In this document: positions 2,267 through 34,800 of the stretch, one piece after another | How positions within the stretch are numbered: position 1 is the stretch's first letter | Layout: each line of letters opens with the position of its first letter | DNA from: Selaginella moellendorffii | Taxonomy: Eukaryota > Plantae > Lycopodiophyta | Assembly: GCF_000143415.4 (NCBI RefSeq) | Contig: NW_003314263.1 | Location: 1,180,165 to 1,244,164 of the forward strand | Length of the DNA stretch: 64,000 bases | Direction: 5' to 3' | The notes under the pieces: generated by a model | The model's input: the letters and a program-made list of their open reading frames with translations, nothing else | Database searches by the model: none | Told to the model about the DNA's origin: nothing | Translations under genes and position numbers: made by a program

Positions 2267-4426
2267 TCTTAGTCTTTTAGTGCCCTTTGTGAAACATGAG
2301 ACAGAAGATAAAAGCTAGATAGTTGCAGCCTTTGGCATCTTTCTTTGTTGTTAATATCATTGCCTTTGCTTTGATTTTGTGGCTGTGATTGTGAACTTGC
2401 ATTGTGTGATGTGTAGTTTCCATGTGGAACTCTCTAGCAATGCAATGTTGGAGGTGTTTTTCCTCCAGCTAGCAGAAGTTTTAGTAGCTCTAAAGTAAAA
2501 GAAACTGTGAAGAACTAATGCATTGCTACTGTTTTTTACTCTAGACCCTTCAAAAAGTCTATCAACATTATTGTTCCTTTACCAAAAGAAGAAACCATCT
2601 TAAATTATTAACAATACTTATGTCTTATAGAAATACCTAAATATTTAAATATAATATAACTATAGTTTAATAAAAATCAGACATCTGTTAATATGAAACT
2701 GTTTTTAAGACACTAATATAAGATGAGGTTTAATTTTATATTTTCTATCAATGTTTATTTTATTTTTTTATTTTATCATTGTTTTCTCTCAAATAGCCTA
2801 TGCACCTAATGTATTTCATTATGAAGATTATGGAACATCTAATGCTCTTCCAAATACAATAGGGTATTTAAATATTCTGATAAGCCTAACAACATTTATA
2901 GGTCAAACGCTACCATCACATAGAACTACACCAGAACGTTCTTTTTTCCATTCATCTTTTTCGGCTGGTCTTTCAAATGGTGAAGCAGTTACAATTGATA
3001 TGGTATTAGCCATTTTTTCCGCTAGTGTTAATTGTCCAATAAATGATCATGGAATTCGTGAAGTTAATAATGATGCTGTTAGTCATTTATTAATGACCGT
3101 TGCTGGAGAAATATATCATACTGCTAATAACTTAAGAGCATCATATCTTGTAACTGTTATTGTTCAACATGATCTTGGTGTTTTCTCAGTAATTTATAGA
3201 ATACGTAACTATGCACTTTTGGTAACATCTTCTTCTAATATTCATTTGTTTTCTTTTCCTTTTAAATTTTGTGACGTTTTTAAAAGTATACTACTTAGTG
3301 GATATAAAGGGATGCATATATCCACTCGTCGTTCAGGTGAGTTTTTAATACATCTGTATAAAGCGTATGTGTTTATAATACAAGAGGATTGTAATACTGT
3401 TTTATATTATAAAACTATAGTTTTATGGTTTACCGGAACTAATGGATTAAGTTTTGATTGTAAATTAAGATTACAGGAGGATGGAAATCTAGTTCTTTAT
3501 TCTGCATTTGATTCTAAAGCTTTATTTTCAACAGGAACATATTGTAGAAAATTTAAATGTGTTGAACCATCAATACTTGTTCTCCAAATAGATTGTAACC
3601 TTGTTCTTTCTAAAGATGGAAAACCACCTATAAGTGTATGGTCAACTAAAACAACATGCTATTATTAAGTTTGTAAAATCTATATATTACTCTTTTGCTC
3701 TCAACTATATTACAAAGGAGAGATAGTGTTTTAAATTTTAATAAAATTACCTTCTAAATCTTATGGTCATTCAACTTTAAATTATGTGTTTTGCAATCAC
3801 AAAAAGTTTAATTATTGTTTGATAAGGCAATTTCGTAAACACATTGCTCAAGATCACATGGATATGATATTAGTATCACAATGACTTAATAATTTCAATT
3901 TGATATGGAATTGAAACAAATACAATCTTCAAATTTTGCAAGCTTTTGCAAATTATGGTAATCCAATGTTTTTTTGGATGGCATATTTTCTATTATTATT
4001 CTAGCACTAGACTATTTGAATTGAAATTGTAATTAGAGCAGTTATAAATACATAATTTTCAGTGTTTTTAATGGTTATCCTATATACACTGTTGATAATT
4101 CTTAATTCATCCAACTTTGAGGATTGTATAAAAGAAATTGACCAAGGAGCTTGTGGAGAATCTCTAGCAGCTGAGCTTAGTGTATTTATTAGGACTACTC
4201 ACCTTGAGGCTATATTAAATATTTTGAATGGTTTATTTTTGTCTGGTCAGCAAGCTTATATTAGATAGGATATACAAGGATATTCAGGTTTTTCCTAGCT
4301 ATATCAGTAAAATTTTAAAATTAATTTAATAAATAATAATACTTTCAAGAAAAAAATTATTTTTAAATAAATTAATATAAATACTAATAATAATACTTGC
4401 AAAAGTGATATAGTGAATTTACCTAG
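2267..4426 (+). mobile_element. AT-rich insertion island, possible non-autonomous Helitron carrying a lectin-chimera gene
   Basis: Abrupt AT-rich, CpG-poor block between two GC-rich genes; candidate A|TC at 2266/2267 and CTAG|T at 4423-4427 (only a weak hairpin ACTT-GCAA-AAGT upstream); 3831-3887 is homologous (inverted) to ~30050-30106 in the large island. Confidence 0.4.
2751..3668 (+). CDS. Secreted protein: signal peptide + unknown N-terminal domain + bulb-type (GNA/B-lectin) mannose-binding domain
   Basis: Intact intronless 305 aa ORF; hydrophobic N-terminus MFILFFYFIIVFSQIAYA; three QxDxNxVxY-type repeats QEDCNTVLY, QEDGNLVLY, QIDCNLVLS; VWSTKT strand typical of B-lectins. Confidence 0.8.
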   Translation: MFILFFYFIIVFSQIAYAPNVFHYEDYGTSNALPNTIGYLNILISLTTFIGQTLPSHRTTPERSFFHSSFSAGLSNGEAVTIDMVLAIFSASVNCPINDHGIREVNNDAVSHLLMTVAGEIYHTANNLRASYLVTVIVQHDLGVFSVIYRIRNYALLVTSSSNIHLFSFPFKFCDVFKSILLSGYKGMHISTRRSGEFLIHLYKAYVFIIQEDCNTVLYYKTIVLWFTGTNGLSFDCKLRLQEDGNLVLYSAFDSKALFSTGTYCRKFKCVEPSILVLQIDCNLVLSKDGKPPISVWSTKTTCYY

Positions 4427-4438
4427 TTTCTAAATTTG

Positions 4439-6697
4439 ATGCTAAGGCTCCACCCGGGTCTCAAGCACGCGATCGATCGACTGGAGGCGGCACAAGCTCC
4501 ATTCCAACGAGATCTCTGTGCCAATCTTCTCCGGGAATGCTGCCGGCTGCGAGCGCTCAACGAAGGCCGGCGTCTCCACGCGCTAATTGCCAGGGCCGGC
4601 CAGACCCAAGACAATCTCCTGGTGAATTCCCTCATCCAGCTCTATGGTTACCATGGATGTCTCCACGAGTCACAATCCCTCTTCCAGAGCCTGCGCAATC
4701 GCAACGTCTTCTCCTGGAACATGATCATCTCGGCCTACATCCACAGCGGCCATCTGTACGAATCACAGAAACTCTTCCACTCGATGGGAGAGAGGAACGT
4801 TTTCAGCTGGAATCTACTAATCAGTGCGTTTATACGCGGCGGGGATACCACCACCGCCGAGAAACTCTTCAACAAAATGCCACAGCGCAGCGTAGTCTCT
4901 TGTAATATAATTCTCGCAGCATATGCCTGGTCTGGGCATTTTTTCCACATTCACGAACTGTTTCTTGCTATGCCCGAGAGGAGCATAGTGTCGTGGAACA
5001 CCATTCTCGATATACACATTACCATCGGAGAAGTGGCCACCGCCAAGCTTGTGTTTGAGAGGCTCCCCAGTTGGGACGTGGTGTCGTGCACCACCATGCT
5101 CGCGGGATTTGCCCAAACCGGGGACTTGGGCACCGCTTGGGCCCTCTTCAAGCGGATCCCCGAGCCCAATGTGGTGTCATGGAACGCGCTACTCGAAGCC
5201 CACGCAGCCAGCGGCGACCTCTGTGGCGCACGGCGGATATTCGACGTGATGCCCGTGCGCTCGATCGTGTCGTGGAACGAGATCCTCCAGCCAAGCGCGG
5301 TGTTGGGCGGGGATCTTGGCTTGGTGCGCGAGATCTTCGGCAGGATCCCGCAGCACAGCATCGTCTCCTGGAACATCTTCCTCCACGCCTGCGCTGCGAA
5401 TTGCCGCTGCCAGTCCGAGTACGAGGAGTTCAAGACAATTGCCGCAGCGGTGCCGGAGGAGGACGTGGTCACGAGCACGCTGGCGATTGCGGCGGCTGCA
5501 AAAGCATGGAATCTGGAAGATGCCGAGGGTATATTTCACTCCATGACATCGCCCAAGAATCTCGTCTGCTGGAACTGCATGCTCCAGGTATATGCCGAAA
5601 CCAGGCATTTGCAGGAATCAGAAGAGTTATTTGACAAGATGCCGGGACACGACACGTTTTCATGGAACACGATGGTGACGGTGTACGCGGAACAAAAGAA
5701 TATACACTCTGCGCAACGGATATTCTCCTCTATGCCGCAACGCAGCCATGTCTCCTGGAACGCTCTGGCTTTCGCGAATGCCCAAGCGGGGCATTTGGAG
5801 GAATCGCGGCGGATATTCGACCTCACCCCCATGACGAACCTCTGCTCGTGGAATGGGATGATGACCGGATACATTGCGAGCCTCGACCTAGATTCCGCGC
5901 GCGCGATCTTCGATGCCTCGCCGGATCGCCCGCTCTGCCTGTGGGCGGCGATGATCCTGGCCTACGCCCAGGACGGCCGATCCAAGCACGCGATCCAGCT
6001 CTTCCGTCTGATGGATCTCGAGGGGACGGAGCCGGATCCGGAAACCCTAGCGGCGATCCTCGACGCGTGCGCGGTGGTCTCGGATCTCCAGGTCGGGAAG
6101 ATCGTGGTGGAGTACCTGGGCGGCGGCGGCGGCGGCGGCGTGGATCTCGTGCTGGGCGGCGCGGTCGTCAACATGTATGCCAAATGCGGCTGCGTGGGCG
6201 ACGCCGAGAGGAGCTTCCTCGCCATGCCCGCGAGGAATTTGATCGCGTGGAACACGATGATCGCGGCCTATGCGCACAGCGGGCGCATCGCGAGCTGCCT
6301 GGCGTCCTTCCAATCCATGCTGCTCGATGGGATCGATCCCGACGGGGTGAGCTTCCTCACGATCCTCAGCGCTTGCAGCCACGCCGGGGCGCTCCAGTCG
6401 GCGATCGAGATCTTCCTCTCGTCCGCCCAGGACCACGGCCTCTCGCCCACGGCGTGGCACTACTGCTGCGTGATTGATCTCCTGGGCAGGGCGGGCAAGC
6501 TGGGCGACGCGGAGGATCTCATCCGGGGCATGCCGTTTAAATCCGACGAGGGCGCGCTGTGGCAATCGTTGCTGAGCTCGTGCCGGAGCCACGGCGACGC
6601 GCAGCGCGGCGCGCTGGCGGCGCGGAGGGCGGCGGCGTTGGAGCCGCGCGAATCGTCCTCATACGTGACGCTGGCCGGCGTTCTCGATGGGAGCTAA
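4439..6697 (+). CDS. PLS-class pentatricopeptide repeat protein with (partial) E domain, no DYW
   Basis: Intronless ~752 aa ORF (first ATG 4439) with many RNVFSWN/RSIVSWN repeats, PDGVSFLTILSACSHAG, HYCCVIDLLGRAGKL, WQSLLSSCRSHGD; ends at SSYVTLAGVLDGS*. Confidence 0.93.
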   Translation: MLRLHPGLKHAIDRLEAAQAPFQRDLCANLLRECCRLRALNEGRRLHALIARAGQTQDNLLVNSLIQLYGYHGCLHESQSLFQSLRNRNVFSWNMIISAYIHSGHLYESQKLFHSMGERNVFSWNLLISAFIRGGDTTTAEKLFNKMPQRSVVSCNIILAAYAWSGHFFHIHELFLAMPERSIVSWNTILDIHITIGEVATAKLVFERLPSWDVVSCTTMLAGFAQTGDLGTAWALFKRIPEPNVVSWNALLEAHAASGDLCGARRIFDVMPVRSIVSWNEILQPSAVLGGDLGLVREIFGRIPQHSIVSWNIFLHACAANCRCQSEYEEFKTIAAAVPEEDVVTSTLAIAAAAKAWNLEDAEGIFHSMTSPKNLVCWNCMLQVYAETRHLQESEELFDKMPGHDTFSWNTMVTVYAEQKNIHSAQRIFSSMPQRSHVSWNALAFANAQAGHLEESRRIFDLTPMTNLCSWNGMMTGYIASLDLDSARAIFDASPDRPLCLWAAMILAYAQDGRSKHAIQLFRLMDLEGTEPDPETLAAILDACAVVSDLQVGKIVVEYLGGGGGGGVDLVLGGAVVNMYAKCGCVGDAERSFLAMPARNLIAWNTMIAAYAHSGRIASCLASFQSMLLDGIDPDGVSFLTILSACSHAGALQSAIEIFLSSAQDHGLSPTAWHYCCVIDLLGRAGKLGDAEDLIRGMPFKSDEGALWQSLLSSCRSHGDAQRGALAARRAAALEPRESSSYVTLAGVLDGS

Positions 6698-8872: not shown

Positions 8873-10932
8873 ATGGGAAGTGAAGCGTCGTACTATGACC
8901 ATGAGAACAATGCGAGCACCACCACTCCGGATTACTCCTCCCCGATTCCCATCCTCCACGGCAAAGCCGGCAATCAATCAACCGGGAATGACCAGCAAGA
9001 ACAACACCACCAAGATCACGCGATTCTTTCCAGGGATGATTCATGGTTTGGGACTTTCAAGTCGATCTTCTGGCACGGTGGCTCTGCTTTTGATGCGTGG
9101 TTGAATGCTACTTCCACCCAGGTGAGTTTCAGCTCAATCACAAAATCATTCTGGAAGAGTTTTTCACTGTTGAATCTTGCGAACTTTTTCTTTTTCCCTT
9201 TCTTTTTTCTTCCCTCCGAAGATCGCTCAAGTTCTTCTCACTTTCCCCTATTCCTTCGCTCAACTCGGGCTAGCCTCCGGAATCGTGTTCCAGCTCCTCT
9301 ATGGATTCATGGGCTGCTGGACATGCTACATGATCACATCGCTCTACGCGGACTACAGAGCAGCCAAAGAGAAGGAGAATCCAAAAGCGTTCGAAAAACA
9401 CACCATCCAGGTATTTATAAAATCACCATAGCCGGCTGCGCATTTTTTCTAAGGATCTTTCGTCCCCTTTCTAGTGGTACGAAGTTCTCGGAGGATTGCT
9501 GGGACCCTACTGGAGAGCCGCGGGGATCTTCTTCAACACCGCGCTGCTATTTTGCACTGCCACCATCCAAGTGATCGCTTGCGGGAGGTAAAACACAGAT
9601 CCAAATCTTCTCCGCGACCCATGAGACCCAATGCCCAGATCTCTCTGAATCGCTTCTCTTCTTGATCGCCCACAGCACCGTCTACTACATCAACGATTCT
9701 CTCCCCAAGCGGACATGGACCATAATCTTTGGAGCTTGCTGCATCATTACCGTGCTCATCCCCACCGCTCACAACTACAGAGTTTTATCCTTCACGGGGA
9801 TCCTCATGACCACCTACACGGCCTGGTATCTCACCATAGCCGCCGGAATTCACGACAAGGTTGGCCATTTTCTTGCTTGTTCTCGTCATTTTCTTCGCTT
9901 CTCCTGGATTTTTGTCCGATTTTCTTCGATTCAATCGAGACTTACGCGCTGCTTCTCTTCTTTTCCTGGTCAGGTTCCGAATGTGACTCACTCTGGACCC
10001 AAGAATATCGTGCAGTACTTCACGGGTGCGACTAACATCCTCTACGCGTTTGGCGGTCACGCTGTGACAGTGTAAGTTGTGGAAAAAGCTTCGAAGCCAT
10101 TGATTGAATGATCTGATTGTTTGGTGGAACTTTTTCTTCCAGGGAGATCATGCATGCGATGTGGAAGCCACGCAAATTCAAGCTCGTCTACCTCTACGCC
10201 ATCCTCTACATCTTCACGCTCACGCTCCCGTCCGCCATCACCGTCTACTGGCGATTTGGCGATACGATGCTCCACAGCGCAAACGCGTTTGGGGTGTTCC
10301 CGAAAAACAAGTTCCGAGATGCTGCCGTCATCCTCATGCTCATGCACCAGGTGAGTCTTGCTCGATCGATGCGCGAACTCTGGAGTAATTTCTGTGTGAT
10401 CGATTGGACTTTGTGCAGTTCATAGAGTTTGGGCTGATTGGCCTTCCGGTCTTTCTCATCTGGGAGAAGTTTTTGGGTGTCCATCACTCCAAGTACTACA
10501 TTCTCCGAGCCATTGCAAGAATTCCCGTCGTTCTCGCGATCTGGTTCATTGCGATCATGATCCCGTTTTTCGGGCCGATCAACTCCGCCGTTGGATCTTT
10601 GCTCGTAACTTTCAGCGTATATCTTATACCCTGCGCCGCTCATATGGTTGTGAACTCCAAATCCACGGCCAGAAAGGTCTGACTTCGTGGACTTTTTCGT
10701 CTTTTTTTGCCAGACTTTGACCGTGCGTTTGACTTTTCAGGCCGCCATAGAACAGCCGCCCAGGTGGATCAGAAGCTGGACAGTGGTGTATGTTCTCAAT
10801 TCTTTGATAATTGTGTGGGTGGTGATTGTTGGATTTGGGTTTGGAGTGTATGCAAGTGTGAAGAATCTGGTGGATCAGATCGATACGTTTGGATTGTTTG
10901 CCAGATGCTACCAATGCCCCAAAAAACACTAA
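8873..10932 (+). CDS. LAX: AUX1/LAX-family auxin influx carrier-like permease, copy 1 (8 exons)
   Basis: Exons approx 8873-9121, 9222-9410, 9475-9586, 9676-9858, 9974-10071, 10144-10350, 10419-10676, 10741-10932; motifs WHGGSAFDAW, AQVLLTFPYSF, YFTGATNILYAFGGHAVTVEIMHAMWKP, PFFGPINS, GLFARCYQC. Confidence 0.93.
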
Positions 10933-23448: not shown

Positions 23449-25199
23449 CTAGCGATTTTCATCAACCGAGTGAGTAGCTAGCAAGCACGAAACGAATGTT
23501 GAGTACCTCCTTTTCCAAAGTGGTAAATTTTCTCCCAACTCAAATGTCGATCCGCGTTGTTCCATGAGGAAAACATCGTAGCGTTTCTGTCAGTCTTTAG
23601 GAAACGATCATGTCTAGGATAATGTTAGGAGACAGCCGGAGTCAACTAGCGACCCAAATGCTCTACCATAGAGCTATGCCTCCATTCCCATCTTACATGT
23701 TTCATAATTTGAATGACCACTATCCTTCTGGGATGCATTACATTTTATCAACGTATGAATATACTATAAAATAAATTATGACATTAATTTAGTTAAGAAA
23801 TAGTTCTGGTTTGTTTTAGAAAATCTATAAAGGTATAAAAAAAAATATATTTAGAATATTTAGACCATCTTCTAGGATATTCTTTAATTCAATTGTGATA
23901 TTCTCTTCTTTAACTTTTTTCTAATAAAAGTTTAACATTAATATTCTAACATATCACTAATATAAACCATATTTACCACTCTCTTTCCTTAAACAAAGAT
24001 CGAGAGATGTGATTGTGATGAGAAGATTAACAATTATATCTAGACTTTGGCATTTGATGTTTATTATGCTATCTTTGGAAAGCAGTCTCCACACTCATAT
24101 ATAACTTTTGGAGAAAGAATAGAGTAATTGCAATATTTTTAGCTACCAAAGCCTAGGTTAGAGTTGTAACCACTTGCATCTATGAGCACTATAATCGGGG
24201 AGCTAAAACAATTGATTAAAAATATTCTAAATACTACTTTTAAAAATGTTATATTATAAAATGTTTTATAAATTTAAATTATAGTTTTATATGTATGGTT
24301 ACAATGCCATATACTAATATTAGCATAGTGAGATTTTGGTAGCTATTGAATTAATTTTAATTCAGACAACTTACTTATGGATATAAGCTAGGGTTTTTGG
24401 GCTATATATTCACATTGGTGGAGATGAGGCGCAATATTAATTGTTCTTGAGGAGTGCTTGGATTTAGAATTCTACTTTAAATTTAGCTTTTAAATTGTCT
24501 AAATTTTCCTTTCCTTATAACTTTTTCAATTTCTTCTCTTTTGCTTTTTTCTTTTTTATTCATTTTTATGGCAAAGTAGTAGCCTCCTCCTCCTTTGACT
24601 CTAAAGTAACAATTGGTGCAATTGTTCAATGTTATATGGTTGCAGTAGAACAATCAAACTTAGTTGATAGTGGTATTCATGACGTTTAGTACAACTCTTT
24701 TTGCTCTTGCTGCCAATCCTCGAGTTCAATCGAAGTCCTTCTATGGGAATGGAATGATGTTTGGTATTTGTGTAAATTTCCTATGTATCTCCAAAAGACA
24801 GCACTGCAATGGTACAATGGTTTGAGTGTAGCTATTCATAAGGATTGGAGCATTCCCCTGGACGTCTTCAAACATGCATTTGGATATGTTGACAATTGTG
24901 ATGATGCCTTTTAACAATTGCATTGTTTTTGTCAAGAGCCATTTAAATCCGTGATGCAATTGACATTCGTTTCTGAAGCTTCTTGCTTTGTGCGAAGCTT
25001 AATATGTTAGAGCAAATTAAGTTGGGAATGTTGTGGGTAGCACTTCATCAAAATCTTGTAAGATTTGTGCATGTATTTGCTCCAAACATCCTTAACAATG
25101 CTCTTTTCTTGGCATAACTTTATGAGGCATTGCCTCTTCCATTTCTCGCCACATGTCTTTCAACTCCACTTCCTATGGGAGATGGTCTTGTTTCAATAA

Positions 25200-26430
25200 A
25201 GGTTGATGCTACTGCTGCCCGAATTCAAGGACAAAGGTGAGGACATGGTCGTGGCCATGATATCCATTGTTGGGCATGTGATGAAGTTGGTTATACTTAT
25301 TGGTGTTTTCTAGATTAGCAACTTCCATTTCTTGGGTAGAGATCTTAGCGTTAATAATGTCTTATTGGTGCTACTATAATGGAAGGTCTAAACATTGAGG
25401 TAACCCTTCCATTTTTCTTTCGGGAGTATCATCAAGGGGTTCACTTGGCACCAATTTATTTAATGTTTACTTTCCAAGCTCATTTTTATAACAAGAGGTC
25501 TCCTATTATTCTCTTTGTGTTGGCTGATATAGGCTTGAGTTTATCTTTTATTGCTTGGCTTATTGTTATATGTTATTATCTACATTTACATTGTGTGGTA
25601 GAGCTCGTTTCATTTTATATGGCAACAACTGTACACACGCATGTGCACAAGACTTAGTTGTGCATGTGGGCAATCTTGAACTTGAGTTGCAGTCATTGTG
25701 GGTGGTGCCAAGTCAAGCTTTTGACCTCATCCTTAGTATAGATTAATTACAGCGTAATCATATCAAATGTGACTTTGAGGTTTCTCCCCCTTATCTCATA
25801 TTTCCTTATATTTCTTCAATTTCTCTTACTTTTGTTCCTCTTTATCCTTCTGCTTTTACCTTTACATCTATCACTTTTGTCTCCCCATTACTTCTTCTTA
25901 CATTTCCATTTTGTTCTTTTATTCCCTCTTCTAATCCTTCTGACGATCTTTGTGTTGTAGTAATTGATCAACTCATGAAGGAGTATGTTGATCTTTTTGA
26001 ATTTGACCTATTGTCTAGGGCTAAGATTGCAATATGTCATCCTATTCCAACTGGGGATGCTCATCTAATCAAAGTTTCTATTTGTCATTGGTTGCCAAAA
26101 GAGATCAAGATTTTATATACAAACGTCAAAGAGATGTTAGAAAAGGGTGTTATTCAAAAGTCACAGAGTCCTTGGATATTTAAACCTCATCTTATGACAA
26201 AACCTAATGGAAGTATTCATTTCTATATCAACTATCATCTGTTAAACAAAGTGATGGTCTTGGGAGTGTACCCTCTTCCTCACACTGCTGATATCTTGGA
26301 TTGTCTAAGAAGAAGTCATTGGTTTACCAAGTTAGATCTTGTTTTTGGGTATTGGCAAGTGTTAAGGAAGATATTCTTAAAACTATTTTTCATACACTAT
26401 TTGGTTTGTACGAGTTGTTGATGATGTTGT
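25200..26430 (+). pseudogene. Decayed Ty3/gypsy gag-protease-RT fragment
   Basis: ORF 25975-26421: EMLEKGVIQKSQSPW...KPNGSIHFYINYHLLNK...YPLPHTADILDCL...FTKLDLVFGYWQV; protease-like VLADIG upstream. Confidence 0.85.
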
Positions 26431-26939
26431 TTGGTTTGACCCAACCTCGGACTTAGTCTTAGACTTGATCTTGAACTTGATTTTATCTAATGAAGTCTTT
26501 ATCATTTTAATTATAGTTTCAGAGATCCTTTAGTGTATGACACTTTGGGGAGTTGGTTCCTTGCAACTCCACCACCTATAAAAAAAATTTGATATTCATA
26601 TTAAACGTCTTTATTTAATCATATGACTTGCTGACCATGTCTCTGGGGGGATCCCTCCACGTCTAAGTCACCCTCCCCAGCTAAGAGCCCATAACAATGG
26701 GATATACCCCTCACCTCACCAAACTCTAGTATAGGGTTGGGACTTGAACCCAACCTTGCTTTACTAGAGGGTTACAATTCAAATTCAAGTTCTGTAAAAT
26801 ACATCTGCGGGGAGTCGAGTGTAGGCTCTTACACTTAGTCAACTTAGCTAACCCATGCTAATTAACTTACCTTTGGCACACCTTTAGGTCCCAACATATG
26901 ATATTGCTCAATTTCACAAATGGATACTTTAATTAAACT

Positions 26940-27275
26940 TTGCATAAGTACATAAAGTTTTACCTTGCAAAATTCTTCCTTTAGATCTTATATGTTTGCT
27001 AAATTCTCCTTCGGTTCCCATGTTGTTTTGCAAAGTGGAAATCCTTTCCACTTCATATAGAACTCCCTCACCTTACATCCTTGTCATTTGCTCTTGTGCA
27101 CATTAAGGATGGCCTCTACGTCGTATTCCTCTTCCCCTTAAATAGCCTTGGGTAAAGGTCTTACTTGGTTTTTGCGAAGTAGATCCTCAAAATACGGTTT
27201 GAGTAAGTTCACATAAAACATATAATGCATCTTCCCCACCGAGGAAGTCAAAGACAATAAACCACTTTACCAATT
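26940..27275 (-). pseudogene. Chromovirus integrase C-terminus with chromodomain remnant
   Basis: Minus frame KMHYMFYVNLLKPYFED...EEEYDVEAILNVHKSK*...EFYMKWKGFPLCKTTWEPKENL. Confidence 0.75.
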
Positions 27276-27285
27276 CGAATCTCAA

Positions 27286-27880
27286 TCTAAGCTCTTGAAT
27301 TTAGACTTTTGGAGAGGTCACCTAGCCCAGTATTATTCAAACCCAAGGACACTTAACCCTAAGTATCCCAAAACCCTTAACCAATTGGAAAAAGAGGTGC
27401 ATTCTTATTCATGGGCCCTTTCCCTTTATATTTGACCCCTTATGGATCATCTTTCGAGTTGTTCCCTTTTATTGCTTATAATTCACCACGCTTCCCTGCA
27501 AGTTCATACCATCATGAACGAAAGCTGAGAGCCACAACTCTCTCAAGAGCCCTACTCTTTTGACACCCTACCCCTTGAGTCGAGCCTAGCTTGAGCAAAT
27601 TAAACCTACCAAATATCAATTAATATGTGGTGTGATTCCCCTAACCAATCAATAGAATCAAACCCAAGACCCCTCTAATACCAAATCTAAGCTCTTGAAT
27701 TTAGACTTCCTAAGAAGTCATCTAGCTTAGTACTATTCAAACCCAAGGATGCTTAATCTTAAGTATCCCAAAATCTTTAACTGATTGGAAAAGGAGGTGC
27801 ACTTTTATTCATGAACCCTTTCCCTCTATATTTAAACTCTTATGGATTGTCTCTCGAATCGTTCCCTTTAGTAGTTTATA
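27286..27880 (-). mobile_element. Degenerate Cassandra TRIM
   Basis: Reverse-complement homolog of 33905-34499: two ~195 bp LTRs, PBS complement CTCTAATACCAAA at ~27673-27685; many C>T/G>A changes. Confidence 0.85.
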
Positions 27881-27882
27881 GT

Positions 27883-28498
27883 AAATTGACTTGAGATTGA
27901 ACTTGGGGGTTAGGGGCCTCAAGTGGGAGTGAGCATGGAGTTAGGTGGTGCCAGAAAGGCCACTCAAAGAAGTGCTTAAAAGTAGCTCCCACTCTCGAAA
28001 GGGAAACCAACTGTAGTGCTCCTAACTCATGTCGAGTGGTGCCCCACATGAATACCACTCCTTCCTAAGGGTTTAGGCATTCCCTTTAAGATGGAAGTGG
28101 GGGAGTAAGGGTACCCATACTCCCCCACTTAGGCCATGGTGTTTTCCCCCAAAGTCCCAAAGTAAGTGATGCACTTAAACCTTAAAATTTAGAGGGTCCC
28201 ATGATTAAGTCTTGATGTACCAAGGGATTTTAGGAATCTGGAGGTTTGGTGTGCTTGATTGCTTGTGCTTGCAAGGAGTGTAGCCAAACTTTAAGTCTAG
28301 TTTAACCCAAAAAGGGGGATTGGGAGAGAATTTAGGAATCTGTGGATGGATGGCTAACACTCTTCTACTTGTGTAGTGAGTAGTTAAATCTATGTAGGAG
28401 CTGGTACAATAAGTGGGATTTTAACTAAGCCCAAGGTGGTGGTGGTCGGATAAATAAGGTAAGTTGGCAAATTGGAAAAGAAAAATTTATGGCTTACA
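27883..28498 (+). mobile_element. Decayed 3' part of the LTR of the gypsy element at 39889-46312
   Basis: Colinear with 41284-41939 (GGGAGTGAGCATGG...GAAAGGGAAACC...AAAAATTT.TGGCTTACA). Confidence 0.8.
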
Positions 28499-28601
28499 AC
28501 TGATTTAGGCATATCATTAAGTGAGGGGATATCCTTATGGCTATGGTCAACAAGTCGTAAGGTTAATTAGGTTCATTCGATGTGGGCATCGAATTTCTTT
28601 T

Positions 28602-29775
28602 TGTAAGCAATTAAATTTTCCTTTCTATTTAAGTTAACCAAACTTTTGATCATTTGGAAGAGTCTCACTCACAACCTTTATGAGTTATATTCCTAACTTG
28701 GGTATATGCTAACTTCGTAAATGACATTTATACCACTCAGCCTTTACACTTGGTCCAAGTGCTCCACATGTCCAATCCAATAATAGACACTCCAAAGGTA
28801 CCACTCACATCTTAGTCTGTTACACTAAAGCTATGTCTATTTACCTTTATCTCATTAGTAGTCCAAAACCACTTATACCATAGTCTCGTAACCCTAAACC
28901 CTAAACCCAAATCTTTCCATGAGTGGTTATCTTAGGACCATATCTTGGCATCCTTAAAATGCTTGAAGATATGAGGAACACCCTTCCCTAATATTTTTTT
29001 TTCAGTCCCTACCAAGTCCCTCTCCATCTACGGCCATGCTCACTGACACTGCCATTAGGTTAGAGCCCAAAGGCCCAATTATTAAGTTCTATTGACCTCT
29101 AAGACTTCCACACCATGTGATTGTATTGTAGCACTCTCTCCCTTTAAGCCAATTGGAAAATGGGCAATTGCTTGATGAGAGAGCCTTTAATGGCTATTTT
29201 ATCCCCATTTATCCCCTAAAGTTCCAAAGATTTATAATGACAGTATATCCAAATTTCATCCATGATCACATATGCTACACTCACCCCCTCTTTAGAGATG
29301 TCAATATCCTCATTAATTATTGACTAACAACCCCTATTGAGCCAAAGGGAACTAACACTTGTACCGTAGTCTTATGGTGGATACTTTCATTTGTAGATAC
29401 CCCATAAGAGAAAGGACATATGTATGGATGCCCAATACATATAATTTCAAATTTTAGGGGTAGAAATATACTTTGCTCAAAGGTATATTATATTTTAAGT
29501 AATCATTAATCAATGGGAATTGAACTCATGCTAATTCACTCATATACCATATATAGCACACTTTATCCTTTCCCTTTAAGCCAATTGAAAAAGGGGTAAT
29601 TGTTTAATGAGATAGTGGCTATTTTATCCCTATTTATCCCCCTAAGGTTCCAAGGATTTATAGTAATACCAAATTATCTCATGATCATATGCGCTACACA
29701 TATCCTTGGTCACAACACAAGAGGATTGTTCCTCTTCCTTTCTACAGTCCAAGACTTTGGGATAACATTTCGAAG
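28602..29775 (-). mobile_element. Partial LTR (same family as 35421-36916), interrupted by a TRIM
   Basis: Starts TGTAAGCAAT...GAGTCTCACTCACAACC, colinear with 35421-36015; resumes after 29698. Confidence 0.75.
29127..29698 (-). mobile_element. Second TRIM family (non-Cassandra), ~150 bp LTRs
   Basis: Direct repeats 29127-29279 and 29552-29698 (T[G/A]TAGCAC...GCTACA); PPT complement CTCACCCCCTCTTT after the left LTR; PBS-like TACCA before the right LTR; flanks TGTAT/CATAT consistent with a decayed CGTAT TSD. Confidence 0.75.
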
Positions 29776-31829
29776 GCTTGAGTTATAATGCTCAATTCTT
29801 TTCTTAAGATCTTTATTATTGCTCTTTGAGTAGCTTGGTATTAGATTAGTTTTGAGTTTGGTTGAAAAACAAGTGGTATGAACTTGTTTATATTATGAAT
29901 AAAGTTGGTGGTGTTTGTTGTTGTAAATCTCTATCGGTGAGGTGTAACATTTATGTCACATTTTGTCAAATAGAGTTGGCATTTGATATTTATATAAAGT
30001 TTTGAAGTAATAATGTGTATTTGCTCATGGTGTTGCTCGATTGATGATCAAGTCATTGTGATTTTTATATCATATCCATGTGATAATGAGCAATATGTTT
30101 ACGAAATTTCTTGATTAAACGATGATCAACCCCAAAGTGGTTAATAGTGAAGCTAATCTATTTGCAAATAGTAATATTGAAGTAGCTTTAACTTGGTTCT
30201 CCATGGTGGTCCATTATATTAAGCTTGAGTTGGTACCTTAGTCCTTGAGAATTTGCCCATTAGGTTTTGGAAAGGGATTATAACATTCACTTACTATGGC
30301 TTGTTAATTTATCCATTAGCACTTGAAGTAAATTATTGGATGGAGAAAGTGTGTAGCTAAACCATTGACATTGATATTGACATGTTAGTGAAAGTGGCAT
30401 TATTGTTTCAAGTGATAAGGAATTTTCTTTAAACCTTGAATTTTTATATTATTTTTTTCTTAGTGTTTTGGCTTTATATTGGAACTTGAAAATGATTGAA
30501 GAAGGGTGTAAATGCAATGTAAATATTTGAAAATATAGTCTTCACGATCAAATAGGGTATTCATTTGCAATTTGCAGATAACAGTGTCGAATATAAATTA
30601 ATTAAGAATGATATTTGATTCTTAAGCATATTGTTAAGTCATAAAAATTTATGTTGAGGTGAACCTATGTGAAGTTGTAGGTAGGAGGAAGTTGGTTGAG
30701 TCTTGAAAATTTATATTCTTAGATTGAAAGTCATTCTTTTTCTAGGATGGAAAATTTGCCACAAATTTTTGTAGACTTTTCCAATAGTTAATCTATTGAT
30801 CATTTTGCCCAAAAACCATTCTGTTTTCGTAAGCCATTATAAACTAGTGAAAAATTGGAATTGACTTCAGTTAGCTTAAACTTTAGTATATAATTTGTAT
30901 AATATAGCCCAAAAAAGATGCTGACTTTTGGGGATAAGGTAATTGAGTTGGATAGAGTCTAGAGTTAGTATAAAAAAGTGGTCAATATGCTTTTCTAGAA
31001 AGGTGACTCTTATACCTTTTTTCTATAATATTATGTTTGGTGACAAATTGTACTTTGCATTTCATTAAATTCTATAAGAGTAATGAGCTCTCATTGATCT
31101 TAACTTAGTCTTGGTAGCTTGTGCTTTGCCTAAGGATAGTGATGTCTAACTTAGTTATTTTAAGTTGAGGTGTTAGTACCCATATTATAGCTTTGTCTAT
31201 AAGGTTGTATTTTATGATCTTCACTTTAGTTACAACTGAGTGTTGATCAAGTATAGCTAGCATCTTCAAGGCATGTTGAGAACTGTTAGCTAAACATGTT
31301 AGTGAGCTTATTGTGGTTCGATTAGATTTGAGTAATCATTTAATATGTACTTGTTCATATTCCTATATCTCGAACCTAGGGTATTACCTTCATGTAGGAT
31401 AAGTATATGACTCGATGGTATGAATTTAATGTTTGGGTCTTATGAAAGACAAGTTGAGTGATTGTTGGTTGCTTTGTGACTAGTGATTGTTTGTAGACTT
31501 TGTTGAGGACTTTTGACACCTGCTTTGCTCGATAATGATTTAGTAGTGATAGCCTTACTTTACCAAATGGTGTTGCAAAGGATCGTGTTGTTAAATTTGC
31601 ATGGTTTTTCTATATTAGCATATCAATTCCATCTCTGTTGATATCATTTAGTTCATGCTATTGGATTACATTCAATCTTAGATGTAATGATTCACTCTTT
31701 GATGATGTGTTATCTATAACTAAGTATTGTTGAAGAATTGGTCCTGGATACTAAGTAGAGAATCTTTGACTTTAGATAGCTTGGTTGCAAGAAAGTTTTG
31801 AGTGGTGATTCACTCTTGCTTTCTTTTAG

Positions 31830-34800
31830 TTTTGTTCTAGCGTTGATAATATTCAAGTAATGTCCTGTCATTGATATTACTGATGTTTAGATTCAAGTGA
31901 AATGAGATGTCTCTTGATTTGGCTACTTTGTCACTCTCTCCCTTGAAGCTTTCATCTTTGCCAAATTGAAGTATTTGGGAATCCATCTTTGGATATACAC
32001 TTCCTTTCCCACAATTTGCTAGCATTTAACACATTAGTGTTCTTTGTCTAACTTTGTCATTTGGATTCTTTCTAATGAATTTCATAGCCCAAACTTGGCC
32101 ACTAGTCTTTTGCTCCTATTTGTTGATTGTTGCACCAAACAATATAAGATCACTACTTCCATCTTCGAAGTATTCTTTCAGTTCCATAGCAAAGGTTCTA
32201 CTTTGCCAAATCTAGAGAGTACTCACCCCTAGTAGGTATCTTTAGCATTTTTTACTATGGGCTCTATCCATAGCCTAATTTTATAACCCTCCCATGGGTT
32301 TTTCCTAGAGACTACTTTCTTGGACTCACTATACCATCCCATTGACATAATTGATTTCCCTTTTGGTTTCCTTCCCACTTAGTCACCTTGACCAAGCTAC
32401 ACCATTATCAATAGTTCAAATCAATATTTTGAACTAAGGACGTTATTCCTTAACTTCACAAAGATCTCATCTTTGTTTAACCGCTGATCTAACCTTTGAC
32501 ACCTTAACAGGTTTGCCAATAGGTACTAGGTCTTTTAGACCTTTAACTTGTTGACCATAACCCTGAGGGCATCCCCCACACTTGGCAGTGCACTCGAGCC
32601 AACTCTTCTAAACAAGGGTCCATAACAACTAAGATTGGGTGTTTCTATCTTATTCACCACATCCTTGGTGCCACGTGTTCAAGTTAAATATGTCGAGCTT
32701 TTACACTAAACAATCTAACCATGCATTACGACTCTGGGGCATCCCCCCGCTTGGCATTATGCCCAAGCCAGTCTCCTTATTGAGAGTCCATGACCACCAA
32801 AAAATAAATATCTTCATATTCCAAACCATCACTACGCCCTAATGAGTTGAGAAGCATTAAAGGATTGGGACTTGAACTCAACCTCTATATATACATCTAT
32901 GGATGGCATCCCCTAGGATGCTTAGCGTGACTCCCCATGCTAGTGCATGAACTTATATTTAAAGTGCGCTATGGATTATAGATTAGAAACCTAATTCCTC
33001 CGCACTGCCAAGTCCTCTCACTTAACAAGTTTGTGATCATGCATGGATTCCTCTATGCTTTGCCCCATGAACCACCCCTTTTTGAAGTCAACACTTTCAA
33101 CTAGAGTTTTTGTTCCCCCCGACTTGCCAATCTCACTTAGCAAGTCCCTCAACTAGCGTAATATGGTTTCATGTATAAGTGTGAAAGTTTTTAACCATCA
33201 ACTTTTGTTCAAAGTCATCTCTTTGAACACTCAAAGGCTACTTCCCCAACCTTGATAGCCTCACCTCATGGCAAGTTTCAAGACCACGCTTTTGCTGTGA
33301 CATTTTGATTTCATACGTTCGATGAACCATTTATACATAACTTTCTAAGTACTAAATTAATGTCGTTATGCATGGGCCTTTTTATACCCATTGCTAGCTA
33401 TACCAAAATCCCTTTTGTCTCTGTCTAATTTAGATAAACAAACTTCTCCCATCTGTGCAACCTTGGACATTGGATAATACCTTTTATCCAATATTTGCTA
33501 GGGACTTCGTCCCTTGGGCTTATCTAATGCCCTCATGATTCCAAACACCACTCCCTAGTGTTTTAAAGTGTTTTGGTGTTCCAATAATGACCTTCTATAA
33601 CAATAAACATTTCCTTTTACGACATTAACTTATTATATTTTAATATAAGCAATTTATCCCCTGGAGGGGTATATCTAACCTCTTTATCCTAATAAGAAAT
33701 TTTGGGTAATTAACTTTTACCAATTCAATCAATTATTTTGCACTTTTTGCTTAATTGCCTCATAGTTGTCAAGTTTTACAACTTATTGCTAATGCTTCCA
33801 TATTTCCATCATTATTTGGGTCACCACACTCTAACACTTCCTGTGTCTAAGTCTTTGTCAAGACTAATATAGTTGTTTTTCATGCCAACTATCCATTAAC
33901 ATTGTGTAAGCAACCAAAGGGAACGACTCGAGAGACGATCCATAGGGGTTCAAATATAAAGGGAAAGGGCCCATGAATAAGAGTGCACCCCCTTTTCCAA
34001 TCGGTTAAGGGTCTTGGGATAGTTGGGGTTAAGCGTCCTTGGGTTTGAATAGTACTGGGCTGGGTGACCTCCCGGGAAGTCCAAACTCAGGAGCTTACAT
34101 TTGGTATCAGAGCAGTCTCGGGTCCGACTCTGTTGGTTGGTTAAGGGAATTGCATCACATGTTGATTGACATCTGGCTGGTCCAGTTTGCTCCCGCTGGG
34201 CTCGACCCGAGGGGTAGGGTGTCAAGAGAGCGGGGCTCTCGGGAGAGCTGCGGCTCTCAGCTTCCGTTCACGAGGGCGTGAACTTGCAGGGAAGCGTGGT
34301 GGATTGTAAGCAACCAAAGGGAACGACTCGAGAGACGATCCATAGGGGTTCAAATATAGAGGGAAAGGGCCCATGAATAAGAGTGCACCCCCTTTTCCAA
34401 TCGGTTAAGGGTCTTGGGATAGTTGGGGTTAAGCGTCCTTGGGTTTGAATAGTACTGGGCTGGGTGACCTCCCGGGAAGTCCAAACTCAGGAGCTTACAC
34501 ATTGCACTATAATGTTCACACACAACTCTGTGACAAAGTTGTTTTTTTCTGGAAACACCTTTCCCATGACTTTAGTATAGCCCATTCTACCATTAATAAA
34601 ATACCCACTATTCTCATACTTGGATATTATGATCCTCCCCATCCTTCGTAAGGCACAACACACCTCAGTACAAATGCTTAAGACTATTCTTTGACTCTAT
34701 TTGAGTTATCCAACTTTTTAGACTTTGCTAATCTGATGGCCTGTAAAGTCCTACTTTTGAGGTGTCTGCTCGCTAGAATACAAGTTTTTATATTCGTGTC

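Follow-up and report, generated by a model that had tools for sequence, protein, structure and literature searches.

The stretch of the Selaginella moellendorffii genome analysed here (64,000 nucleotides, contig NW_003314263.1, positions 1,180,165 to 1,244,164; hereafter the window) carries two open reading frames (ORFs) on its forward strand, ORF1 (2751–3668, 305 aa) and ORF2 (55584–56453, 289 aa), which encode secreted-looking proteins with a lectin domain at the C-terminus. Position 1 of the window corresponds approximately to position 1,180,165 of the record of scaffold GL377567.1 (assembly GCA_000143415.2), the anchor being the exact match of an intronless pentatricopeptide repeat (PPR) protein encoded at 4439–6694. 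ORF1 is unannotated in this assembly, where it lies between two genes called by NCBI; ORF2 is unannotated as well, and the product of neither ORF has a match in any public assembly annotation.

The two genes and their lectin domain

Both ORFs begin with ATG, contain no internal stops and encode, in one uninterrupted frame each, an N-terminus resembling a signal peptide (a visual call), an N-terminal domain (N-domain) and a C-terminal domain (C-domain) of the GNA type, which is followed by the stop codon. The first-pass annotation of the window, made from the sequence alone, had described this architecture for both ORFs, and its coordinates proved exact. It had also called the genes intronless and far more AT-rich than their neighbours, and both statements hold: a single ORF spans the signal peptide, the N-domain and the entire lectin domain, and the GC content of the ORFs is 0.25–0.30, with 0.11–0.12 at third codon positions (GC3) against a GC3 of 0.78 in the adjoining PPR gene. 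In ORF1 the predicted signal peptide (residues 1 to ~17, 2751–2801) displays, by eye, a hydrophobic core and A-Y-A ahead of the likely cleavage site; the N-domain (residues 18–177, 2802–3281) and the lectin domain (residues 178–305, 3282–3665) come after it. In ORF2 the N-domain occupies residues 17–166 (55632–56081) and the lectin domain positions 56082–56450. The string CAGGTGAGT at 3336–3344 resembles a splice donor; an intron at this place was rejected, as the in-frame translation matches GNA residue for residue.

Each gene is located in an AT-rich island (AT island 1, 2290–4440; AT island 2, 53700–56540). When the bases of each island were shuffled 500 times, the longest ORF starting with ATG was 54–55 aa on average and 117–123 aa at most, against the observed 305 and 289 aa. 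ORF1 and ORF2 are real genes and not chance ORFs.

The C-terminal ~125 aa are a genuine GNA/B-lectin domain of the β-prism II type. ORF1 matches 67 proteins, mostly mannose-binding lectins of land plants, every one of them via the C-domain (the best is a Thalictrum lectin, phmmer E 3.6e-22), and among PDB sequences the C-domain finds gastrodianin (1xd5) as the best match (E 1.6e-14), followed by GNA (1jpc) and the daffodil lectin. Over the last ~115 residues ORF1 and ORF2 share 35% identity (BLASTP E 5e-15). AlphaFold2 models the C-domains of ORF1 and ORF2 with predicted local distance difference test (pLDDT) values of 77–95 (82–95 in ORF2, as a β-prism II), and Foldseek superimposes the C-domain on 1xd5, 1npl, 1msa and 2d04 with template modelling (TM) scores of 0.81–0.89, the ORF2 model reaching TM 0.89 and a root-mean-square deviation of 1.7 Å with gastrodianin 1xd5. 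The equivalents of the Cys29–Cys52 disulfide of GNA, Cys214/237 in ORF1 and Cys198/220 in ORF2, are aligned to invariant cysteine columns. Each of the five family members described below keeps two of its three QxDxNxVxY sites intact, always including the middle one: ORF1 retains QEDCNTVLY and QEDGNLVLY, with tyrosine changed to serine in the third site (QIDCNLVLS); in ORF2 the first site is degenerate (HLNCILALY), and QIDGNIVLY and QNDCNLVLY are intact. Similarity, predicted fold and the two sites all agree with the GNA-type lectin initially proposed for this end of the protein, and the motifs and models provide us grounds to predict a sugar-binding module with two of three mannose-type pockets kept. 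The scores against Pfam B_lectin (PF01453), 16.8 and 17.1 bits, lie under the gathering score of 32.4, which probably helped to hide the genes from lectin censuses based on InterPro or Pfam identifiers (e.g., PMC6362431).

A family under purifying selection

A search with the lectin domain of ORF1 alone (128 aa) returned SELMODRAFT_19150, a 96-aa "partial hypothetical protein" of S. moellendorffii (66% identity), together with two cluster mates. The corresponding loci L002, L003 and L004, situated on scaffolds GL377574.1 (two places) and GL377615.1, carry intact 300-aa ORFs at positions 9401–10303 of each locus (p3, p4 and p5), with the same architecture as ORF1. The NCBI models SELMODRAFT_19150, 19156 and 19142 (partial, 96 aa, 10001–10288 of L002, L003 and L004) are the C-terminal thirds of these proteins, the first 200 codons having been missed. 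p3 and ORF1 share 50% identity along their entire length (E 2e-109), and BLASTP aligns p3 with ORF2 over residues 49–286, most of the N-domain included, at 27% identity. Two cysteines of the N-domain (95 and 174 in ORF1) and six of the lectin domain stand at equivalent positions in all five members, and the frame is open in every one of the five copies examined, across 27–85% identity. The genes form a family with a common architecture; in other words, the annotation of a reference plant genome has overlooked a family of secreted-looking lectins, of which five intact members are verified here and only the last 96 codons are covered by gene models in three copies. At locus L001 no further copy of the family is present within 5.5 kb upstream. 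In L003 an assembly gap (a run of N) stops two bases short of the p4 start codon and takes in the p4 promoter region; the homology boundary seen exactly at the ATG between L002/L004 and L003 is an artefact produced by the gap.

In pairwise comparison p3, p4 and p5 differ at 79–106 nucleotides and are 79–85% identical in amino acids, with no indels. The ratio of non-synonymous to synonymous substitution rates (dN/dS) is 0.49–0.56 by NG86 and 0.15–0.21 by YN00; per domain, NG86 gives 0.54–0.65 for the N-domain and 0.30–0.44 for the C-domain. In a neutral simulation with an equal number of changes and the observed substitution spectrum (3000 runs), the frames all remained open in 0.1–0.5% of the runs (probability of no stop 0.001–0.005 per pair), and 0–5 runs had as few non-synonymous codon changes as observed. 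The open frames together with this deficit thus indicate that the family is under purifying selection, the N-domain included, while it evolves fast. Neutral dN/dS was not seen among the paralogues, and the earlier description of a rapidly diversifying multigene family of secreted-looking proteins with a working-looking GNA lectin domain is supported at the level of sequence.

The N-terminal domain

In sequence searches the N-domain is an orphan. Exhaustive phmmer comparison of ORF1 residues 18–180 with 1.84 billion representative proteins revealed no relative, and neither did word-index searches, full-length and region-restricted, single-sequence queries against PDB sequences, or two runs of the ESM Atlas feature search; Pfam contains no family for the N-domain, and PHROGs matches the lectin part only. 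The matches to DUF2417 (E 0.016) and MASE9 (E 0.024) are under threshold and differ between members, and we ascribe them to chance.

As for the mutual similarity of the N-domains, BLASTP gives no alignment between ORF1 and ORF2 in this region. The alignment made by eye in the first-pass annotation stands in part: Smith–Waterman comparison recovers the same block (score 41 against 30.7±5.3), and the p3 alignment and the shared cysteines agree with it, although, taken alone, the block is only marginal, since 102 of 2000 shuffles reach 41. Homology of the N-domains of the ORF1-type and ORF2-type branches is likely, albeit statistically thin for the N-domain alone.

The best homologues of the C-domain are tandem two-domain lectins of equal total length (Thalictrum, 291 aa; Acorus, 272 aa; a metagenomic protein, 258 aa; aroid agglutinins), and for this reason the N-domain was tested as a decayed first lectin domain. 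In hhalign the ORF2 N-domain aligned with an alignment of 25 lectin domains (A3) over 45 columns (P 0.0039), S-G-E-x-L, G, F-x-I-Q-x-D, W, G and C being matched, and the ORF1 N-domain agreed with the third lectin motif (TVIVQHDLGVFSVIY against VLQKDRNVVIY). We also used a purpose-written semi-global alignment, in which the whole 107-column lectin profile is forced onto the N-domain and the result is expressed as z against shuffles. ORF2 reached 4.14 (0 of 3000 shuffles), p3 3.26, p5 2.59, ORF1 1.88 and p4 1.31, with the three sub-domains in identical order in all five alignments, and a profile of the ORF1 and ORF2 pair gave 3.0. Among the controls, reversed N-domains gave z of about -0.9, ~28 clean unrelated natural segments at most 2.45, and segments truly containing lectin domains 10–17. 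The N-domains and the lectin domain have a β-favouring composition in common. The N-domain of ORF2 is collinear with the whole B-lectin profile (SGExL..G..FxIQxD..W..G..C, then two degenerate sub-domains) and contains no intact sugar motif; that of ORF1 is probably a decayed B-lectin, on evidence that is weak when taken alone.

Judging by these alignments, the N-terminal ~150 aa are most likely a first B-lectin domain in which no sugar motif has survived and whose sequence has drifted past the reach of ordinary searches. On balance we incline to regard the family as a tandem GNA-related lectin with a sugar-dead, decayed N-domain rather than as a new effector chimera. It is best filed as a lineage-specific, divergent and previously unannotated variant of the tandem GNA-related lectins, so that the proteins, presented at first as a candidate new family, most likely match a lectin-fusion architecture that has already been described.

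A number of observations weigh against this assignment. The z values of ORF1 and p4 are inside the range of the negative controls, the lectin signal being mainly that of ORF2 and p3; the profile of all five members gives z of only 1.2 and no hhalign match, and a PDB search with the five-member N-domain profile produced nothing relevant. Lectin hidden Markov model scores of the N-domain (HMMER) have p of about 0.05 by shuffling, and the homology between ORF1-type and ORF2-type N-domains is marginal (p 0.01–0.09). The N-domain is 150–160 aa long against ~110 aa for a lectin domain. AlphaFold2 renders the N-domains of ORF1 and ORF2 as low-confidence helices (pLDDT 33–71) rather than a β-prism; the input alignments were deep over the lectin domain only, and we treat these N-domain models as uninformative. 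Finally, in three raw RNA-seq libraries of one study (~12% of each sampled, tissue unrecorded) the depth is zero over 2285–4057, ORF1 included, in all three, gametophyte and induced states being probably outside the sampling, and words of island 1 are next to absent from ~18 further S. moellendorffii assemblies that are probably of RNA.

Some of these points, namely the weak lectin-profile signal of ORF1 and p4, the lack of gain with the family profile and the excess length of the N-domain, are at the same time arguments for the proposal of the first-pass annotation, by which the N-domain would be a new non-lectin effector or toxin domain delivered by the lectin to glycosylated surfaces of pests or pathogens, in a layout like that of AB toxins. 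The proposal also draws on the selection acting on the N-domain and on the blank results for the N-domains in word-based searches, Pfam and PDB sequences and for ORF1 among the 1.84 billion representatives. We nevertheless find it doubtful and do not retain it: the N-domains of ORF2 and p3 are collinear with the whole lectin profile and score above every clean control, the closest homologues are tandem lectins of equal length, the composition is of the β type as in the lectin domain, and neither a catalytic motif nor a toxin or enzyme domain was detected across Pfam, PHROGs, PDB sequences, the Atlas and the exhaustive HMMER search. The assignment to tandem lectins thereby corrects what was a tempting over-reading.

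Islands, expression and relation to known lectins

The five family members have a GC3 of 0.09–0.12, compared to 0.67–0.79 in neighbouring host genes and 0.37–0.55 in the ORFs of local Ty3 retrotransposons; the GC content of the flanks (0.18–0.35) is also above the GC3 of the lectin-family ORFs. AT island 1 (GC 0.22–0.33, observed/expected CpG ratio 0.31) is bordered on one side by the PPR gene and on the other by a transcribed minus-strand gene, whose 5' end faces it. In AT island 2 (GC 0.20–0.33, CpG ratio 0.18) the left part is composed of pieces of transposons that recur at other places of the window. In neighbouring genic DNA the CpG ratio is 0.87–1.13. The two islands have no non-coding sequence and no other conserved ORFs in common, neither convincing terminal inverted repeats nor other termini of an element were detected, and there are no tRNA genes at the island borders despite T-arm-like strings. 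The paralogous loci resemble each other only over the ORF, ~230 nt upstream and ~100–230 nt downstream.

Several smaller features accompany the islands. An 86-nt fragment of island 1 (3808–3893) matches the opposite strand at 30044–30129 with 83% identity and probably belongs to a small repeat family. Downstream of ORF2, a 35-nt direct repeat (56511–56545 and 56648–56682, 91% identical) brackets a segment of ~100 nt with a T-arm-like string, in which ARAGORN predicts no tRNA; the sole tRNA gene of the window is that of tRNA-Pro (AGG) at 14793–14864. A Ty3-type long terminal repeat retrotransposon occupies 39800–47830, with gag, zinc knuckle and aspartic protease at 42350–43771 and an N gap at ~40.3–41.3 kb. 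Repeats whose translation yields SDSISDS-like strings flank this retrotransposon and recur at 37.2–38.0 kb and 52.3–52.7 kb. The stretch 24000–34000, with a reverse-transcriptase-like ORF at 25975–26421 and a GC content of 0.29–0.43, represents decayed retrotransposons and is AT-enriched, less so than the lectin genes.

In the libraries that contain no reads over ORF1, the upstream minus-strand gene is covered 38–93× and the PPR gene about 1–8×. The former, a DUF8204 gene at 1162–2114, has three read-confirmed introns and is spliced in two alternative ways at the first joint (1437/1506 or 1440/1512). At eight single-nucleotide polymorphism positions the minor allele is present in ~15–50% of its reads; the exon lengths derived from the reads do not add up to the annotated 231-aa product. 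Within island 1, a stretch of ~33 nt (4140–4173) is covered by RNA reads 31–45×, but these reads have long, consistent unmatched tails on both sides and therefore originate from an expressed locus elsewhere that shares the short string, not from transcription of the island. The absence of transcripts, named in the first-pass annotation as a finding that would go against it, has thus been encountered for ORF1 only, as zero reads in the three libraries.

The low GC3, together with the position of the family in transposon islands, raises the question of its origin. The genes could be foreign or mobile cargo (from an AT-rich virus or another donor) or retrocopies, spread as ~1.3-kb cassettes into transposon islands, the frames being intact owing to constraint in the donor or to recent arrival. 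This explanation concerns origin and is compatible with either interpretation of the N-domain. A GC3 beneath that of host genes, retrotransposon ORFs and even the flanks would fit it, as would the lack of introns in all members, their dispersal over at least three scaffolds, the confinement of paralogous similarity to the ORF and short flanks, and the zero RNA reads over ORF1; moreover, unannotated, horizontally acquired dispersed families have already been reported in the S. moellendorffii genome (PMC4083422). We still hold it to be improbable. The best matches of the lectin domain, in searches within a length window that excludes S-domain kinases, are land-plant lectins, IMG/VR viral contigs contain no relative of the genes (a scan that detects close relatives only), element ends and other conserved ORFs common to the islands are missing, and the fact that members down to 27% identity are all intact requires long-term selection somewhere.

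Still less credible, in our opinion, is the supposition that the ORFs have lost all function and stay open by chance, as dead genes in a transposon graveyard. It could appeal to the lack of RNA reads over ORF1, the CpG-depleted and presumably methylated surroundings, the absence of any complete gene model and the fairly high NG86 dN/dS of about 0.5; however, frames of 289–305 codons at 25–30% GC far exceed the shuffle maximum of 123 aa, five of five copies are intact across the whole span of identities, neutral change would rarely leave the pairs free of stops (P 0.001–0.005) and does not account for the significant non-synonymous deficit, and the GC content follows a strong codon-position gradient (in ORF1 and ORF2, 0.33–0.40 at first, 0.30–0.37 at second and 0.11–0.12 at third positions).

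The extreme AT codon usage, the location in islands and the zero reads over ORF1 set the family apart and are not explained by its assignment to tandem lectins. Purifying selection acts here despite CpG-poor transposon islands, and synonymous sites are about 90% A/T, compared with 67–79% G/C in neighbouring genes. A bolder possibility, which we put forward tentatively and think rather unlikely, is that the family goes beyond a divergent tandem lectin: its N-domain could be a truly novel fold or effector, or its members could be hidden recognition proteins used under attack or in gametophyte and reproductive stages, long selected in silenced, methylated AT islands with foreign codon usage (GC3 about 0.1). 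In the latter case the GC3 could reflect acquisition from a donor rich in AT, or a mutational and epigenetic compartment of its own for conditionally used lycophyte genes.

Within the tandem-lectin interpretation, the following mode of action may be suggested. The protein would be secreted via its predicted signal peptide, the C-domain would bind mannose-type glycans at the surface of a foreign or a partner cell, and the N-domain, as a sugar-dead lectin-derived module, might serve as a scaffold or as a surface recognizing a protein or other target, a role proposed by analogy with the two-domain lectins of aroids and garlic and with LlpA. As ORF1 drew no reads in the three libraries, whose tissue is unrecorded, expression of the genes, if any, would presumably be restricted to particular conditions or stages outside the sampling, such as stress or attack, or reproductive or gametophyte tissue. 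A putative role in defence or reproductive recognition is plausible considering the rapid evolution and clustering of the genes. Genes in actual use would make the family a candidate for defence or reproductive recognition in a lycophyte and a plant counterpart of the dead-beside-live lectin layout of LlpA; if the genes are idle, their persistence calls for another explanation.

Among known systems, the two-domain GNA-related lectins (tarin/CEA, Remusatia RVL, Pinellia PTA, garlic ASA-I and Scilla SCAfet, 1dlp) resemble the spikemoss proteins in a signal peptide, predicted by eye in the latter, and in two tandem domains of bulb-lectin size, and the precursor lengths are similar (289–305 aa in the family, 258–303 aa in the tandem homologues P0001 from Thalictrum, P0003 from Acorus, P0004, P0010 and P0016). 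In plant two-domain lectins, too, point mutations have inactivated part of the sugar pockets (PMC6359319). The spikemoss N-domain, in contrast, is devoid of any QxDxNxVxY motif, lies beyond Pfam and BLAST detection and is ~40–50 aa longer; there are two extra cysteines in the N-domain and four in the C-domain, a C-terminal propeptide is absent. The genes, moreover, belong to a lycophyte and have an extreme AT bias in their codon usage, and no expression was detected.

The closest parallel in layout to what is proposed here, a divergent sugar-dead N-terminal domain beside a C-terminal domain with intact pockets, is provided by LlpA and pyocin L1 (tandem MMBL, 4le7). In LlpA the divergent N-domain sets the target specificity and the pocket of the C-domain is required for activity (PMC3585409, PMC3916391). 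LlpA proteins are bacterial, possess a C-terminal β-hairpin extension and kill related bacteria through the rhamnan of lipopolysaccharide, while the spikemoss proteins belong to a plant and end a few residues past the lectin domain without such an extension. The similarity of the C-domain to LlpA-type bacteriocins (sequence E 5.5e-4, Foldseek TMt 0.33) is weak but significant and applies at the domain level only, so the likeness is one of layout and not of membership.

Gastrodianin/GAFP-1 (1xd5, antifungal and monomeric) and GNA (1msa, 1jpc) resemble the C-domain in the conserved disulfide and the motif layout, but they consist of one domain of ~110 aa and lack any partner domain at the N-terminus. 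Curculin/neoculin (2d04), although composed of single-domain heterodimers from a monocot with no tandem gene, has a GNA fold in which mannose binding was lost and protein recognition gained, and thereby offers a precedent for a functional sugar-dead β-prism II such as the one we suggest for the N-domain of the spikemoss lectins.

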